Shown here one piece after another: positions 3,001 through 61,657 of a stretch of 64,000 nt of DNA. The translations under genes and the position numbers were made by a program. The stretch is from the sequence record KJ019143.1. One strand, written 5' to 3'. Positions within the stretch are counted from its first letter, which is position 1; each line of letters starts with the position of its first letter. The notes under the pieces are model-generated. The model was not told where the DNA came from and did no database searches. It saw only the letters and a list, made by a program, of their open reading frames with translations.

Positions 3001-6000
3001 TTACTTTGATATTAAGAAGAATGTAGATTCATTCCCGTCTGAGATTGATGTTGAGTACTACTTCAACCCACACCAAACAGTGGCAGTTGGATTGGAGACT
3101 GGTGTAAGTGTTGGTTTGGTGTATTCAATTGGTACTATCGATAAGAATATCTCAGTACAGACTCAAAGAATATATGCACCATCCCATGGTTTCAGAACTG
3201 GTGAGGAGATTACTTTTGAGAAGAATGATACTGATACTGCATTAGTTGTAACAGACGGTAGTACTGTATATACACTACCTGGTGTAGGTAATACAAGTAA
3301 TGCATATGTTGTATCACTATCCAAAAACTATATTGGTATTAGAACAGTAACAGATGGTCCTGATCTATTCTTCTCTACTGATGGTTCCGATTCTCCTCTA
3401 TATTCTATTAAGACTAATCGTTTCGCTGAGACTGCATTAGTAGATAGAATTCAGGCAGAAGTTAAAACGAAAACGGATCATAGGTTGGGGAATGACGATC
3501 AGATATTTACTGATGTTATTTCTTCTGGAAAATCAGGTGTCGGTACTAACCCCAACATCAAACTTGAGTTCGATGATTCATCACAATCACTTATTGTAGA
3601 TCCATACTTCACACAACCTAGTGATATTGATACGGTTAATAACCTAATTAATATCAATAACCACGGTTATACTAATGGGGATATTGTTCTATATCAAAAC
3701 TATGGAAGTTCTATTGGTGGTTTAACAACTCATCACAAATATTACACTATTCCCTTTGATAGGGATAAGTTCTATGTTGCTGAAACATTTGTTGATGTAA
3801 GACCCGGAACTAAACTACCTGTGAATCTAACTTCTGTTGGTATTGGTTCCCATAAGTTCTCCAAGGTCAATCCACCACTACTCATCACTAATAATAATGA
3901 TATTGAGTTTGATGTGTCATCACCAACTCTATTTGGTAAAACACTAGAATTCTTCTTTGATCGGACTCTAACTGAAATATTTGATAATAACAGTATAGAC
4001 AATGTATTTGTTGTTTCTGGTGTATCTACTGAGGGATACGAGGATGCTAGGAAGTCTATTAGATACTCTGATAACAATCCAGATGTATTCTTCTATGGTA
4101 TTACTGAAGGTGGTTATATTTCCACTGCAGATACTGAAGTATCTAGAAACAACTCTATTAGATATGAGGCAAGTGAGTACGCAATTGAAGGTAGAGTAAC
4201 CGTTATAGACGATAGCACCTTTACCTATACACTCAATACTATTCCCGAGAAGCCACTATACACTAATCCTGATACACAACTCTCATACAAGACTTCCTCT
4301 AGTACTGCTCTAGGTGGTGTTGGTAGATTGAATATCATCTTCAGTGGTAATAACTTCCCAGCTCTACCTGAGTTTGAGGGTATTCAAACTGAGTATGGGC
4401 AGAACGCAACTATCAGAGCAGAGTCTGATGATATTGGAACACTTGCTTCCTTCAGAATCCAGAACGCTGGTTGGGATTACTCCGCTGATAATACACTTCG
4501 CCCCTTTGGTGTTATTCAACCAACCATTAGATTTGATAATAGTGACTTTGTTACTGAGGTTACTGTTCTTGATGGTGGTAATGGATATCAGAACCCCCCT
4601 AATGCTGTTCTAGTAGACTCTGTAACAAGAGAAGTAGTAGATAATGGATCTATCATCCTAGAGGTACAATCATCCACCATCACAGATGTTATTGTTGAGG
4701 TTGCTCCTTCTGGTTTATCCAAGGATCTCCAAGAACTATGGACTGTCAATAATAGTAATGGTATTCCTATCCTACTAATTGGTAACATTGATAATGTTGC
4801 TGGTGTAGTTACATATACAGTACAGACTCCTATTGAGGGTTATGCGACACCACCATTCTCAGTTGGTGATAGAGTATTTGTTGAGAATATTCTAGTAGAT
4901 CAAGATGCTCCCCCCTCTAAACTCAATTCTGGTGATTATGGGTATCAGTTCTTGGAAGTTGTTGCCGTAACACCAACAAACCCAATCACTATTGGTATTC
5001 AGTATCCTGAAGAAGCTATTGGTAACCTAGGTTATGGTGTTACTTTCCAACAGGCTTTCTCTGGTATTGTTAACGAGGATATCTATCCTAAGTTTGCAGT
5101 ACAACAGACAACTGCAGTCTTCCTAGAGGGTGAGAGACTTTCTATCTTTGATTCCTTTGGTAATCTTGATGAGACTGACCTAGTTGTGGAAGAGTCCAAC
5201 ACTAGTTTCTTTAAAGTTACTGGAAACTATGATTTATTGGTTGGTGATGTACTCAAGGGTAACAATAGTGGTGTTATTTTAACTGTTACTGAAATTGACA
5301 GTAGTAGTTGTAGATATCTAGTTGATTCTATCTCCAGAATCAACACTGGTTGGAACGATAAGACAGGTTTCCTTAATGAGGAGACACAGAACCTACCAGA
5401 TAACGATTACTATCAGAATCTATCTTACTCAATTAAGAGTACAATTAACTTCGAGGAACTTATCAACCCAGTCAATAGATTAGTACACCCTTCCGGTCTA
5501 AAGAACTTCTCTGATACCAAGATTGAGTCTATCGGTGATATTGGTGTTGGTAGTAGTGAGAGCTCTGAGTCAACAGTTACTATTGACTTTATTGGTCTAA
5601 CTGATATAGCAGAAACTCCACTGAGAGTTGATCGCATCAATGTATTCGACTTGGGTTGGGATGCCAATGTCAATAACAACAGATCTAACGCCATTAGACT
5701 TCAGAGTAGAACTCCTAACAAGAGACTAACTGACTATATCGAAGTTCGTACTAACAGAGTATTGATGCATGACGACATCAGTAACGAGTTTATTGACTCA
5801 GATAATGCCTCTTCCAAGTCCCCCTATAGTGAGTTCAATATTATCACTGGTGAATATACCAGAGGATTGGTTCAGGCAAGAAATCCCTTCACTGATCAAG
5901 TTCAATTCACTGAGATTATTGTTTTATCAGTTGATAACAGTGCCTTCACTTTACAGAAGGCGAGTATCTCTGATAATGATCTTGGTTATGGTATCTTTGA

Positions 6001-57980: not shown

Positions 57981-58367
57981 ATGAACAATGATTATGATAG
58001 GGAACTTCCTTCCCCAACCGGATCTACGGGGGCAGTTGAACTAATGATTGAATCTATTGACCAGATGAGCAACAATGATCCAGTAGTAAAACTAGTTCTA
58101 CTGAAGAATAATGAAACTATTATTGCTGAGGTTCGTGAGAGTATCGATGGAAGTAGTGTTCAGCTCATTGACCCTCGTGTAGTTCTACTACAGGCAGCAA
58201 GACCATCTGATGACGGACAGACCACAACAACTGCCATCTCATATACCGACTGGTTACCTTTGTCTGAGAGTAGAAACTTCACTATTGCTGGTGATTATGT
58301 GGTCCTTATCACTGATCCCATTGAAAGTTTAGTAGAAAGTTATACACAGGCACGACAAAATGGATGA
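57981..58367 (+). CDS. Hypothetical protein, Sm-like fold candidate
   Basis: VKLVLLKNNETIIAEV...DP...YTDW. Confidence 0.65.
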   Translation: MNNDYDRELPSPTGSTGAVELMIESIDQMSNNDPVVKLVLLKNNETIIAEVRESIDGSSVQLIDPRVVLLQAARPSDDGQTTTTAISYTDWLPLSESRNFTIAGDYVVLITDPIESLVESYTQARQNG

Positions 58368-58641
58368 AACTATTAGAGTATTGGTCTTGACCAATGGAAA
58401 AGTCCTTATCAGTAAGATCGAAGAGATAGGAGGTGCTGATATCGGGGAGCCAGACTGCCGTCTAACCGACCCAGTATGGTATAATGATGAGGTGGAGGAA
58501 ATGACTGAAGGGTTCAAACGCTTTCCTGGTAAGGGGATAACACCCGATACCAAGTTGGCCATCTCTTCTGTCAATATCTTGACTCTGGTTACCCCAGATA
58601 ATAAACTCCTCAGTGAATACCTCGTGTTTATTAGTGATTAA
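58360..58641 (+). CDS. Hypothetical protein, Sm-like fold candidate
   Basis: IRVLVLTNGKVLISKIEE...DP; coupled to the gp43A start. Confidence 0.65.
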   Translation: MDETIRVLVLTNGKVLISKIEEIGGADIGEPDCRLTDPVWYNDEVEEMTEGFKRFPGKGITPDTKLAISSVNILTLVTPDNKLLSEYLVFISD

Positions 58642-60116
58642 TGTCTAACAAGTTCTACACCAATGTTCAGCTTTATGGTAACAACATCCTCCTACGCGGG
58701 TATGAGAACGGAGAGAAGTTTCACACTAGGGAACAATACTCTCCCACACTATATGTGAGTTCTAAGAAACCTAGTGAGTGGAAAACACTTACTGGTGAGA
58801 ATGTTCAACCAGTGAAACCCGGATCTATTAGAGATTGTAGGGATTTTATCAAGAAGTATAAAGATGTAGAGAACTTTAATGTGTTTGGTAATGAGAGGTT
58901 TGCCTTTCAATACATTGCAGACAACTATCCTGGGGAGATTGAATATGATCCTCAGTTGATTAATATCTTGAGTTTGGATATTGAGGTTGAGTCTGAACAT
59001 GGTTTCCCAGATCCAGAGTCTGCTAATGAGGAAGTACTACTCATTACTATTCAGGACTATGTTACCAAACAAATCATTACTTGGGGTCAGATAAAGCATG
59101 GGGAGTTTGATAACCAACAGGATAATGTAGATTTCCGTCCCTGTGAGAGTGAGTATCACCTACTGAGTGCCTTTATTCAGTGGTGGCAACAGAACCCACC
59201 TGATGTTATCACTGGGTGGAACATTGACTATTACGATATTCCATACCTCGTTAGACGTATGAAGAGGGTGTTGGGTGATAAACTAGCAAGCACTATCTCC
59301 CCTTGGAAGTTCGTAACAGACGAAGAGCACTTCTTCAAGGGTATGAATAAACTATATTATAATATCGCTGGTATCACCCAACTAGACTACCTAGTTTTAT
59401 ACACTAAGTTCACATATACGAACCAAGAGTCATACAGACTAGACCACATTGCTAATGTGGAGTTGGGTCAGCAGAAGTTAGACCACTCTGAGTTTGAAAC
59501 TTTCAAAGACTTCTACCGAAAAGGTTGGCAGAAGTTCGTAGAATATAACATCGTTGACGTGGAACTGGTTGATAGGATGGAAGAGAAGTTGAAACTCATT
59601 GACCTTGCCATCACTATGGCGTTTGATGCCAAGGTTAACTTCCAGGATGTATTCTCACAGGTGAGACTATGGGATACTATTATCTATAACTATCTCAGGG
59701 ATAGGAACATTGTTATCCCTCAGAAGGAACAGACTAGTAAGAGTGAGAAGTTCGCTGGAGCATATGTAAAAGAACCCAAACCCGGTCTATATGAATGGGT
59801 GGTGTCCTTTGACCTTAACTCCCTGTATCCTCACCTACTAATGCAATACAACATCTCTCCAGAAACATTGATGGAAGAGAGGTGTCCTAATATCTCCATT
59901 GAAAAGGTTCTCAATGAAGAAGTAACCTTTGAGATGTATAAAGACTATGCTGTTTGTCCTAATGGGGCAATGTATCGCAAAGATGTCCGCGGGTTCCTAC
60001 CAACCCTAATGGAAAAGATGTATGATGAACGAAAGGCGTTCAAACAAAAGATGTTGAAGTCCAAACAAATCCTCGTTGATATCGAGGCTGAAATGAAAAG
60101 AAGAGGTGTATTATGA
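58641..60116 (+). CDS. gp43: DNA polymerase gp43, N-terminal subunit (gp43A: exonuclease, motif A, first fingers helix)
   Basis: ExoI LDIEVESE, ExoII GWNIDYYDIPY, ExoIII YNIVDVELV, motif A SFDLNSLYP; TGA stop at 60114-60116. Confidence 0.93.
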   Translation: MSNKFYTNVQLYGNNILLRGYENGEKFHTREQYSPTLYVSSKKPSEWKTLTGENVQPVKPGSIRDCRDFIKKYKDVENFNVFGNERFAFQYIADNYPGEIEYDPQLINILSLDIEVESEHGFPDPESANEEVLLITIQDYVTKQIITWGQIKHGEFDNQQDNVDFRPCESEYHLLSAFIQWWQQNPPDVITGWNIDYYDIPYLVRRMKRVLGDKLASTISPWKFVTDEEHFFKGMNKLYYNIAGITQLDYLVLYTKFTYTNQESYRLDHIANVELGQQKLDHSEFETFKDFYRKGWQKFVEYNIVDVELVDRMEEKLKLIDLAITMAFDAKVNFQDVFSQVRLWDTIIYNYLRDRNIVIPQKEQTSKSEKFAGAYVKEPKPGLYEWVVSFDLNSLYPHLLMQYNISPETLMEERCPNISIEKVLNEEVTFEMYKDYAVCPNGAMYRKDVRGFLPTLMEKMYDERKAFKQKMLKSKQILVDIEAEMKRRGVL

Positions 60117-60271
60117 GTTTTCGTCACAAAACATATGGTGGTCTAGTTCATTATGACCACAATGATAAGATTATAGTCATTGAACGTCGATTGAATCCAA
60201 TGCAACACCACGCTATGCTTGTGAGTAAGTTGAAGGAAGAGTATCCAGAGTATCAAGTAGTTACTGGATAG
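60113..60271 (+). CDS. 52-aa intercistronic ORF within split gene 43 (not in the ORF track)
   Basis: MSFRHKTYGGLVHYDHNDKIIVIERRLNPMQHHAMLVSKLKEEYPEYQVVTG; ATGA overlap with the gp43A stop; GAGGTG Shine-Dalgarno. Confidence 0.6.
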   Translation: MSFRHKTYGGLVHYDHNDKIIVIERRLNPMQHHAMLVSKLKEEYPEYQVVTG

Positions 60272-60486
60272 TGAGTGGTTTAGTTGCTGAGATTATGCAA
60301 GTCGTTACTATGATTACTATGCTATTCAATATGTGCAATAGTAATGAGTTCAACAGACAAGCATGTATGAAAGACTGGGATACTTGGTTATTACCTGAGA
60401 TATCCCGTGCGTGGCAAATTAAAACAGGTCAGGAAGCCCCTTACCAAAACGAGGAAGATGTGGTAGAATGGCACCAACAGCAGTGA
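60271..60486 (+). CDS. Second intercistronic ORF within split gene 43 (hydrophobic N-terminus, two Cys)
   Basis: 71 aa from GTG 60271 (or ATG 60295); MQVVTMITMLFNMCNSNEFNRQACMKDW. Confidence 0.6.
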   Translation: MSGLVAEIMQVVTMITMLFNMCNSNEFNRQACMKDWDTWLLPEISRAWQIKTGQEAPYQNEEDVVEWHQQQ

Positions 60487-60487
60487 G

Positions 60488-61657
60488 GTGTTTATCGGTT
60501 ATCTTATTGGTGGTTCGAGTGAAGGACCCGATGAGGAGATTGTACAATCAGATAGTGACTATTCTAAACTATCTGATAAGCAACTGCAATACCTAAGAGC
60601 ACAAACCATAAAGGATATTGCTAAGTTTTATAACTTCCAGCAAGTAAGGAAAATTACCCTAAACTCCGCTTATGGTGCTTTGGGTAACCAATACTTCAGA
60701 TACTACAAACTGGCGAACGCGGAGGCAGTGACCTTCTCTGGTCAGTTAAGTATCCGTTGGATTGAGAATAAGATGAATGGATTCATCAATGAGATTCTAA
60801 AAACAGAGGGTAAGGATTATGTGATCGCCTCTGATACTGACTCTATCTACATTAACTTTGGTGATGTGGTAGATAAGTTCTTGAAGAAGTTTGATGGTGA
60901 TAAGGAGAAGACTGTATCAATGGTAGATAAGATCTGTAAGGATCAACTAGAACCCTTCATTGATAAGTGCTATTCTCAGTTGGGTGAGTATGTGAATGCA
61001 TACGAACAGAAGATGCAGATGAAGAGAGAGAATATTGCAGATAGGGGTATATGGACAGCGAAGAAGAGATATATCCTGAACGTGTGGGATAGTGAAGGTG
61101 TTCGTTATGAGGAACCTAAACTGAAGATGATGGGTATTGAGGCTGTGAAGTCATCTACACCTGCCCCTTGTAGAACTATGATCAAGGATGCTCTCCGTAT
61201 TATCATTGAGAAATCTGAGGATGAAGTCATTGACTACATTGATGATTGTAGGAAGAAGTTCAAACAGATGAAACCAGAGGAGATCGCGTTTCCTCGTTCC
61301 GTTAGTGATATGATCAAGTTTCGTTCTGGGACAACAATATATGCTAAGAGTACTCCTATGCATGTGAGGGGGGCGTTACTATTCAATCATCACATTAAGA
61401 AGGGTGGGTTGGAGAACAAGTATTCTCTCATCAATAGTGGTGAGAAGATCAAGTTCTGCTACCTCAAGATTCCTAATCTAATTGGTGAGAATGTTATCTC
61501 ATTCATCTCCGACTTTCCTAGGGAACTTAAGTTGGAGAAGTATGTTGATTATGATACCCAATTCAATAAAGCATTCCTAGATCCACTCAAGATCATCTTG
61601 GATGCTATTGGTTGGAACTGTGAGAAGCAGATGTCCTTGGAGTCATTTTTTACCTGA
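60488..61657 (+). CDS. gp43: DNA polymerase gp43, C-terminal subunit (gp43B: motifs B and C, thumb, clamp-binding tail)
   Basis: Motif B KITLNSAYG, motif C ASDTDSIY, KKRY, C-terminal QMSLESFF. The exact start codon is uncertain. Confidence 0.92.
   Translation: MFIGYLIGGSSEGPDEEIVQSDSDYSKLSDKQLQYLRAQTIKDIAKFYNFQQVRKITLNSAYGALGNQYFRYYKLANAEAVTFSGQLSIRWIENKMNGFINEILKTEGKDYVIASDTDSIYINFGDVVDKFLKKFDGDKEKTVSMVDKICKDQLEPFIDKCYSQLGEYVNAYEQKMQMKRENIADRGIWTAKKRYILNVWDSEGVRYEEPKLKMMGIEAVKSSTPAPCRTMIKDALRIIIEKSEDEVIDYIDDCRKKFKQMKPEEIAFPRSVSDMIKFRSGTTIYAKSTPMHVRGALLFNHHIKKGGLENKYSLINSGEKIKFCYLKIPNLIGENVISFISDFPRELKLEKYVDYDTQFNKAFLDPLKIILDAIGWNCEKQMSLESFFT

Follow-up and report, generated by a model that had tools for sequence, protein, structure and literature searches.

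Split forms of gp43, the replicative family-B DNA polymerase, are already known among T4 relatives. Two accounts (PMC3061061, PMC2988022) describe a bicistronic gp43 cut at the fingertip in Aeromonas phages 44RR, 25, 31 and 65 and in Acinetobacter phage 133, with spacers between 43A and 43B that range from 2 bp to 3 kb and, in Aeromonas phage 25, with a GIY-YIG gene between the halves. The 43A and 43B proteins of phage 25 co-purify, with polymerase activity, according to one of these accounts (PMC2988022, citing Petrov 2010). Here we describe the same kind of split in a different phage family. Our subject is gene 43 of Synechococcus phage ACG-2014f isolate Syn7803C12 (KJ019143.1; Kyanoviridae, Atlauavirus), analyzed in a window of 64,000 nucleotides (nt) whose positions equal those of the record minus 62000. 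The polymerase is encoded there by two cistrons on the plus strand, gp43A (58641-60116) and gp43B (60488-61657), and we consider it probable (about 0.85) that ACG-2014f makes its replicative polymerase as two polypeptides, translated separately, that associate without becoming covalently linked.

The cyanophage loci have in common with the Aeromonas and Acinetobacter examples the fingertip cut, adjacent and co-oriented cistrons, a variable spacing and, sometimes, a GIY-YIG gene between the halves. Moreover, the A half ends and the B half starts at the same alignment columns in Aeromonas phage AS-zj as in the window, which bears out the proposal of an earlier note on this DNA, made from the letters alone, that the split is of the kind established for Aeromonas phages. 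The likeness does not extend to the sequences themselves. AS-zj is about 38% identical to the cyanophage halves and its tails are unrelated, whereas the cyanophage halves are 56-95% identical to unsplit cyanophage gp43. The split is thus nested in the cyanophage lineage and, judging from these identities, may have arisen independently of the Aeromonas-type split. The tail and head sequences at the break also differ between the cyanophage and Aeromonas-type halves, and the junction in the window holds two small conserved genes that do not encode endonucleases.

More distant examples show what such a cut can entail. A fingertip split engineered into Pfu polymerase, made by termination and reinitiation of translation, behaves like the wild type (PMC3061061). 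It resembles the cyanophage arrangement in the site of the cut and in the overlapping stop and start codons from which its halves are made by coupled translation, with activity fully kept, but it is artificial and archaeal, has a short fingertip and lacks terminal extensions. The PolB of Methanothermobacter thermautotrophicus (Kelman et al. 1999, via PMC3061061) is also a family-B polymerase of two polypeptides. As described there, the break is in the palm, about 83 residues beyond the engineered Pfu site toward the C terminus, and 85 kb separate the two genes.

Two intact cistrons cut at the fingertip

In KJ019143 GenBank gives two coding sequences (CDSs) the product name 'gp43 DNA polymerase' and lists two hypothetical proteins in the interval. 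The first, gp43A, has 491 amino acids (aa) and carries the N-terminal domain, the 3′-5′ exonuclease with Exo I-III, motif A of the palm and the first of the two fingers helices. The second, gp43B, has 389 aa when counted from a GTG codon. It carries the other fingers helix, which includes motif B, together with palm motif C, KKRY, the thumb and a putative clamp-binding tail. It begins 371 nt downstream (the gap is 60117-60487) and in the +2 frame relative to gp43A. The earlier note had already assigned Exo I-III and motif A to the first half and motifs B and C with the clamp-binding tail to the second, and the residues that it quoted from the end of gp43A and the head of gp43B match the sequence exactly.

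Profile and structure comparisons assign to the two halves consecutive parts of one polymerase. Pfam recognizes in gp43A a DNA_pol_B_exo1 domain (5e-25) followed by positions 19-142 of the DNA_pol_B profile, and in gp43B positions 148-254 of that same profile. When compared with the full-length family phrog_262, gp43A spans positions 7-495 and gp43B positions 499-851, so no part of the polymerase has been lost or duplicated. Each half also matches a half-size PHROG family, phrog_2062 for gp43A (8e-233) and phrog_1918 for gp43B (2e-177). Alignment with the solved structures of T4 and RB69 gp43 (4e-79) extends through RB69 residue 493 in gp43A, where Exo I, II and III and motif A are found by alignment to the T4 gp43 chain 9e5y_A. 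The RB69 structure aligns with gp43B (5e-67) over residues 531-901 and identifies motif B, motif C, KKRY and the C-terminal tail. The alignment reaches residue 901 of the 903 in standard RB69 chains and takes in the hydrophobic, putative clamp-binding tail.

The cut falls at the fingertip between the two fingers helices, at RB69 residues 493/531, with motif B about 30 residues after it; this is where the earlier note had located the break. The tip that remains unaligned consists of 16 residues at the end of gp43A and 25 at the start of gp43B, or 41 residues compared with 37 in RB69. The fingertip is much shorter in unsplit cyanophage gp43, as represented by Bellamy and S-T4.

Both halves are under strong purifying selection. 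The proportions of non-synonymous (pN) and synonymous (pS) differences were compared among seven ACG-2014f isolates, namely the window and six others (L021-L025 and L027; L numbers are our handles for the loci compared), and pN/pS is 0.02 in the A core and 0.05 in gp43B codons 26-389. The same layout of four genes is present in 45 of 45 ACG-2014f records (41 isolates and four RefSeq copies, 96-100% identical in nucleotide sequence). In addition, motifs A, B and C and KKRY are invariant columns in the sets used for residue conservation, which comprise 20 A halves and 52 B halves. Gene 43 is thus divided into two intact cistrons, and, as the earlier note had argued from the catalytic motifs, the division is not decay; nor is it an artefact.

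Artefactual breaks do exist in public records. The gp43 gene of metaG-MbCM1 (L003:1986-4490) lies in four pieces, which we attribute to sequencing error because the neighboring Hsp20 and UvsX genes are each in two pieces as well, and gp43A is in two pieces at L028:1148-2624, a 2.7x long-read contig, in what also looks like a sequencing artefact. One could therefore suppose that the ACG-2014f gene is broken, either as a decaying pseudogene or through an assembly or sequencing error, and that the phage uses another polymerase. This is extremely improbable, since the 45 records with identical layout derive from cultured isolates, both halves are selectively maintained with every catalytic motif intact, and the same half-sizes recur in hundreds of independent metagenomic clusters.

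In the non-covalent gp43A/gp43B heterodimer that we infer instead, gp43A would contribute everything from the N-terminal domain and the proofreading exonuclease through palm motif A to the first fingers helix. The remainder, from the fingers helix that bears motif B through palm motif C and the thumb to the clamp-binding tail, would come from gp43B.

Small genes in the gap

The earlier note gave the correct distance of 371 nt between the halves, but the interval is not a mere spacer, as it holds two small conserved genes on the plus strand. The first, orf52 (60113-60271), belongs to phrog_3538 (6e-43), and the second, orf71 (60271-60486), matches phrog_3571 (8e-55) and phrog_703 (8e-9). All 16 differences in orf52 among the seven isolates are synonymous, and the pN/pS of orf71 is 0.11; on these figures we take both to be real genes. 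A homologue of orf52 with 50% identity occupies the same place in L009, and others (43-47% identity) are found at unrelated loci in S-N03 (record 70519-70659) and S-CREM2 (record 5117-5221). In S-N03-type genomes this homologue adjoins a DNA adenine methylase gene. Given its presence at unrelated loci, orf52 behaves as a small movable gene. The orf71 protein is 46% identical to that of an open reading frame (ORF) that separates the two gp43 halves in S-N03 (L006) and MC09 (L008), and a relative is also present in L028.

The four cistrons are chained by their stop and start codons. The ATG of orf52 overlaps the gp43A stop in the sequence ATGA (60113-60116), with AGAGG 6 nt upstream and within the last codons of gp43A. 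The GTG of orf71 overlaps the orf52 stop by 1 nt (TAGTG, 60269-60273), and the orf71 TGA (60484-60486) ends 1 nt before the gp43B GTG at 60488. Promoter-like and terminator-like sites between 58300 and 62100 are no more frequent than in shuffled sequence, which fits a single transcript. Because the stops and starts overlap or abut in this chain (ATGA, TAGTG and TGA-g-GTG), the four cistrons are probably co-transcribed and translationally coupled.

An interruption inside a conserved gene might also be a self-splicing intron, perhaps carrying degenerate ORFs, whose removal would restore a single gp43. Some phage polymerase genes do harbor group I introns, and gene 43 of both Aeromonas phage 25 and phage JSE is among them (PMC2993671). 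However, a search of 59600-61000 against Rfam at E<=1 returned no intron family and only a chance match to a snoRNA. The two halves are in different frames, and the gp43A tail with its stop codon and the gp43B head are conserved and under purifying selection. The orf52 and orf71 genes of the gap encode conserved proteins that are present at other loci too. Moreover, many relatives have an empty junction in which the stop of A and the start of B overlap by 1 nt (L010, L011, L013, L014, L016, L018 and L019, and 12 loci from IMG/VR). This overlap leaves no room for an intron and nothing to splice, so RNA splicing is not needed to explain the split. For these reasons we judge an intron to be very unlikely.

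Terminal segments and the start of gp43B

The last 15 codons of gp43A (60069-60113, plus strand) form a tail that is absent from unsplit cyanophage gp43 in alignments with Bellamy and S-T4. Five of its residues (L478, E482, E484, M485 and R488) are invariant in the 20 A halves. Across ten lineages the tail has a pN of 0.20 and a pS of 0.86, at which synonymous sites are saturated, giving a pN/pS of 0.23. In 8 of 10 loci the Arg-Gly codons of the tail also provide the following cistron with a run of purines that resembles a Shine-Dalgarno sequence. Its Leu and Arg codons vary freely across the ten lineages, which together with the pN/pS value indicates constraint at the level of the protein. 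The tail is predicted to prolong the first fingers helix: an AlphaFold2 (AF2) model of gp43A, weak overall, has one unbroken helix at residues 452-487, with a predicted local distance difference test (pLDDT) score of about 70 in the tail.

The head of gp43B comprises its first 23 codons (60488-60556, plus strand) and is likewise not found in unsplit alleles. Residues 4-9 (G4-G9) are at least 90% conserved in the 52 B halves, so that both of the extra terminal segments to which the earlier note had drawn attention are real. In the first 25 codons of gp43B (60488-60562) the seven isolates show a pS of 0.50 and a pN of 0.12 (pN/pS 0.25), compared with a pS of 0.06-0.16 elsewhere in gp43A and gp43B. 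These values indicate a segment that is translated and yet a hot spot of exchange, and the sharp local peak of divergence probably results from exchange between alleles. The head-coding region also contains a perfect inverted repeat (60547-60577) with arms of 10 nt and a loop of 11 nt. The RNA fold near the gp43B start is not compelling (z = -1.76).

We infer that the A tail and the B head help the halves to assemble. The nearest analogue for such a function of insertion-borne tails may be the split nrdA of Aeromonas phage Aeh1 with its mobE endonuclease gene (PMC3045599; PMC2988022). In that case the insertion that divides the essential enzyme is associated with a free-standing homing endonuclease, and the NrdA halves reassemble non-covalently via terminal segments that the insertion brought. 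The analogy has limits: the enzyme is a different one, the gap in the window contains no endonuclease gene, and the cyanophage tails are putative aids to assembly.

Joining of the halves by protein trans-splicing would be the other way to obtain a whole polymerase from two cistrons. Marine metagenomes contain fractured genes of the cyanophage type that encode split inteins together with a free-standing endonuclease gene (PMC2677866). These resemble our locus and its relatives in that cyanophage-type replication genes are cut and an endonuclease gene may lie between the halves, as it does at this very junction in some relatives. They differ in that their halves carry split inteins and become ligated. 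The extra segments of the ACG-2014f halves have only 15 and 23 residues, and Pfam detects no intein (or endonuclease) domain in either half or in the small ORFs, the halves having polymerase domains only. Furthermore, in lineages with a short B head the extra residues on B number one to three, initiator Met included. A split intein is accordingly an explanation to which we give almost no credence.

A separate question is how gp43B is started. The candidates in the window are the GTG at 60488, which is the GenBank start, and an ATC at 60494-60496, where relatives have the ATG from which they start B. Among the isolates read, only the window has the GTG; the codon is GTT in the six others (L021-L025 and L027, positions 2001-2009 for the stretch 60488-60496). 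In 26 of 45 ACG-2014f records the first 37 codons of the B frame lie outside any annotated CDS, and in the five of those records whose annotation was read the gp43B start falls after motif B, which would remove essential residues.

Several observations weigh against two separately made and self-assembling polypeptides. In five of the six other isolates the B frame has no in-frame ATG, GTG or TTG before motif B, and in the sixth (KJ019146) the only such codon is a TTG at codon 6, which is also the annotated start in that record. This leaves the two-polypeptide reading with a difficulty over how B would be made in step with A. AF2 folds each half poorly when it is modeled alone, with a mean pLDDT of 49 and 57. 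Finally, B halves of the S-CREM2, S-N03 and L009 lineages do without the N-terminal stretch of the head, which cannot be a general requirement for assembly.

Regarding the start, the frame of gp43B stays open in the isolates that lack a canonical start codon, and the codon that corresponds to the ATG of L010, L013 and L028 is kept as ATC or ATT (60494-60496 in the window). It is preceded by GAGG (60485-60488) 5 nt upstream and by the orf71 stop 7 nt upstream. Initiation or reinitiation at this ATC/ATT codon is most likely. Alternatively, gp43B might not be started by itself at all, and a +1 shift at the end of orf71 would yield an orf71-gp43B fusion, or ribosomes would bypass the gap from gp43A. 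The B frame is in fact open for 7 codons upstream of 60488, where it overlaps the end of orf71, and 28 nt (60462-60489, through the first two bases of the codon at 60488) are identical in all seven sequences; the GTT codons and missing canonical starts of the other isolates also favor such a mechanism. However, the orf71 stop lacks a slippery motif, its P-site CAG being unable to re-pair in the +1 frame, and for this reason a shift is a weaker explanation than an ATC/ATT start. The retention of ATC or ATT behind GAGG where relatives have ATG points the same way. In addition, L028 has the same insert as the window and yet a normal TAA-ATG junction, S-N03 has an ATG of its own for B, and bypassing of 371 nt with stops in every frame has no known precedent. 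We consider both forms of this alternative unlikely. The missing canonical start is a new puzzle, and it makes gp43B a natural case in which non-canonical or coupled initiation of an essential gene can be studied.

Distribution of the split and the fingertip module

The earlier note regarded the split as unusual in a cyanophage, and in this respect it was mistaken. A survey for the same breakpoint, which the note had suggested, places the split at the same column in the cultured phages S-CREM2 (whose halves are annotated 'DNA polymerase subunit A/B'), S-N03/S-H34 and MA01/MA10/ME01/MC09. Among the best 120 clusters (at 90% identity) found with gp43A as the query, 23 are half-size (487-520 aa), and all of these end in a close variant of the window tail. 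With gp43B as the query, 118 of the best 120 clusters are stand-alone B halves of 384-392 aa, some of them on contigs of 181-183 kb. The best 80 loci from IMG/VR comprise 55 unsplit and 16 split alleles, with 9 that could not be classified. The split is thus common in marine cyanomyoviruses and is present in about one-fifth of the closest metagenomic relatives. Our literature search found no paper that describes a split gp43 in cyanophages, and the papers on S-CREM2 and S-N03 are silent on it. Rather than being confined to a few Aeromonas phages, a split replicase is a frequent and stable polymorphism within one of the ocean's most abundant groups of viruses.

This distribution matters for g43 as a marker gene, because any survey or pangenome built on the expectation of one gene of about 830 aa will count these phages wrongly. 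The mis-annotation of which the earlier note had warned does occur. The A half of S-N03 (L006:2005-3471) is labelled 'adhesin'. In MC09 (L008:2005-5207) the product names look shifted by one gene, such that both halves are labelled hypothetical and 'DNA polymerase' is assigned to an 81-aa ORF and to the ORF after B. The late gp43B starts and unannotated heads of ACG-2014f records are further instances.

The junction varies in content, and the spacing of the halves in the cyanophage set ranges from -1 nt, an overlap, to about 680 nt. An orf52-like gene accompanied by another small ORF is found in the window, L009 and L028, and an orf71-like gene in S-N03, MC09 and L028. The junction of S-CREM2 carries a 98-aa ORF (orf98) that was considered as a relative of orf71 and rejected as unrelated. 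Other junctions hold endonuclease genes. A SegE-like GIY-YIG endonuclease of 234 aa is encoded at L012:3021-3725 and L075:4605-5309 (phrog_314, 8e-40 and 7e-37), and an HNH endonuclease of 153 aa at L045:4226-4687 (phrog_374, 1e-56). The gap in the window (60117-60487) shows no similarity to endonucleases and no detectable remnant of the L012 gene. Small genes, and homing endonucleases of two families, have landed repeatedly at this junction.

Split and unsplit alleles interleave in a neighbor-joining (distance) tree of the A core. For example, split P0013 is 95.5% identical over the A core to unsplit P0091, whereas its identity to the closest of the other split alleles is just 83.9%. At the DNA level, the split L016 and the unsplit L017 differ by one indel of about 135 nt with flanks that are 72-99% identical, and L018 and L020 are 84.6% identical with one indel of 134 nt. 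The module defined by these indels consists of the A tail, the stop/start junction and, in lineages with a long head, the B head. No terminal direct or inverted repeats were found at its borders. The ACG-2014f split would belong to this fingertip module of about 134 nt, which appears to be common to many marine cyanomyoviruses, and orf52 and orf71 would sit exactly at the module's junction. The near-identical split and unsplit alleles provide a natural series on how a cut at the nucleotide-binding fingers is tolerated.

The module may have spread by transfer, perhaps aided by endonucleases, or it may have been gained and lost repeatedly. A more specific scenario, which we offer tentatively and hold to be somewhat less probable than its negation, is that the module is a mobile gene-splitting cassette that junction GIY-YIG and HNH endonucleases have spread between cyanophage gp43 alleles. 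Under this scenario the tail and head would have been kept as aids to assembly, as in Aeh1 NrdA, and B would be started at AUU or AUC by reinitiation after orf71 in most ACG-2014f isolates.

Upstream of gp43A lie two small genes of 128 and 93 aa (57981-58641), and the end of the 93-aa gene overlaps the gp43A start by 1 nt. This pair occupies the spot of DUF6561 proteins in relatives. The order Hsp20, two small genes, gp43, small ORFs and UvsX is kept in every locus inspected.

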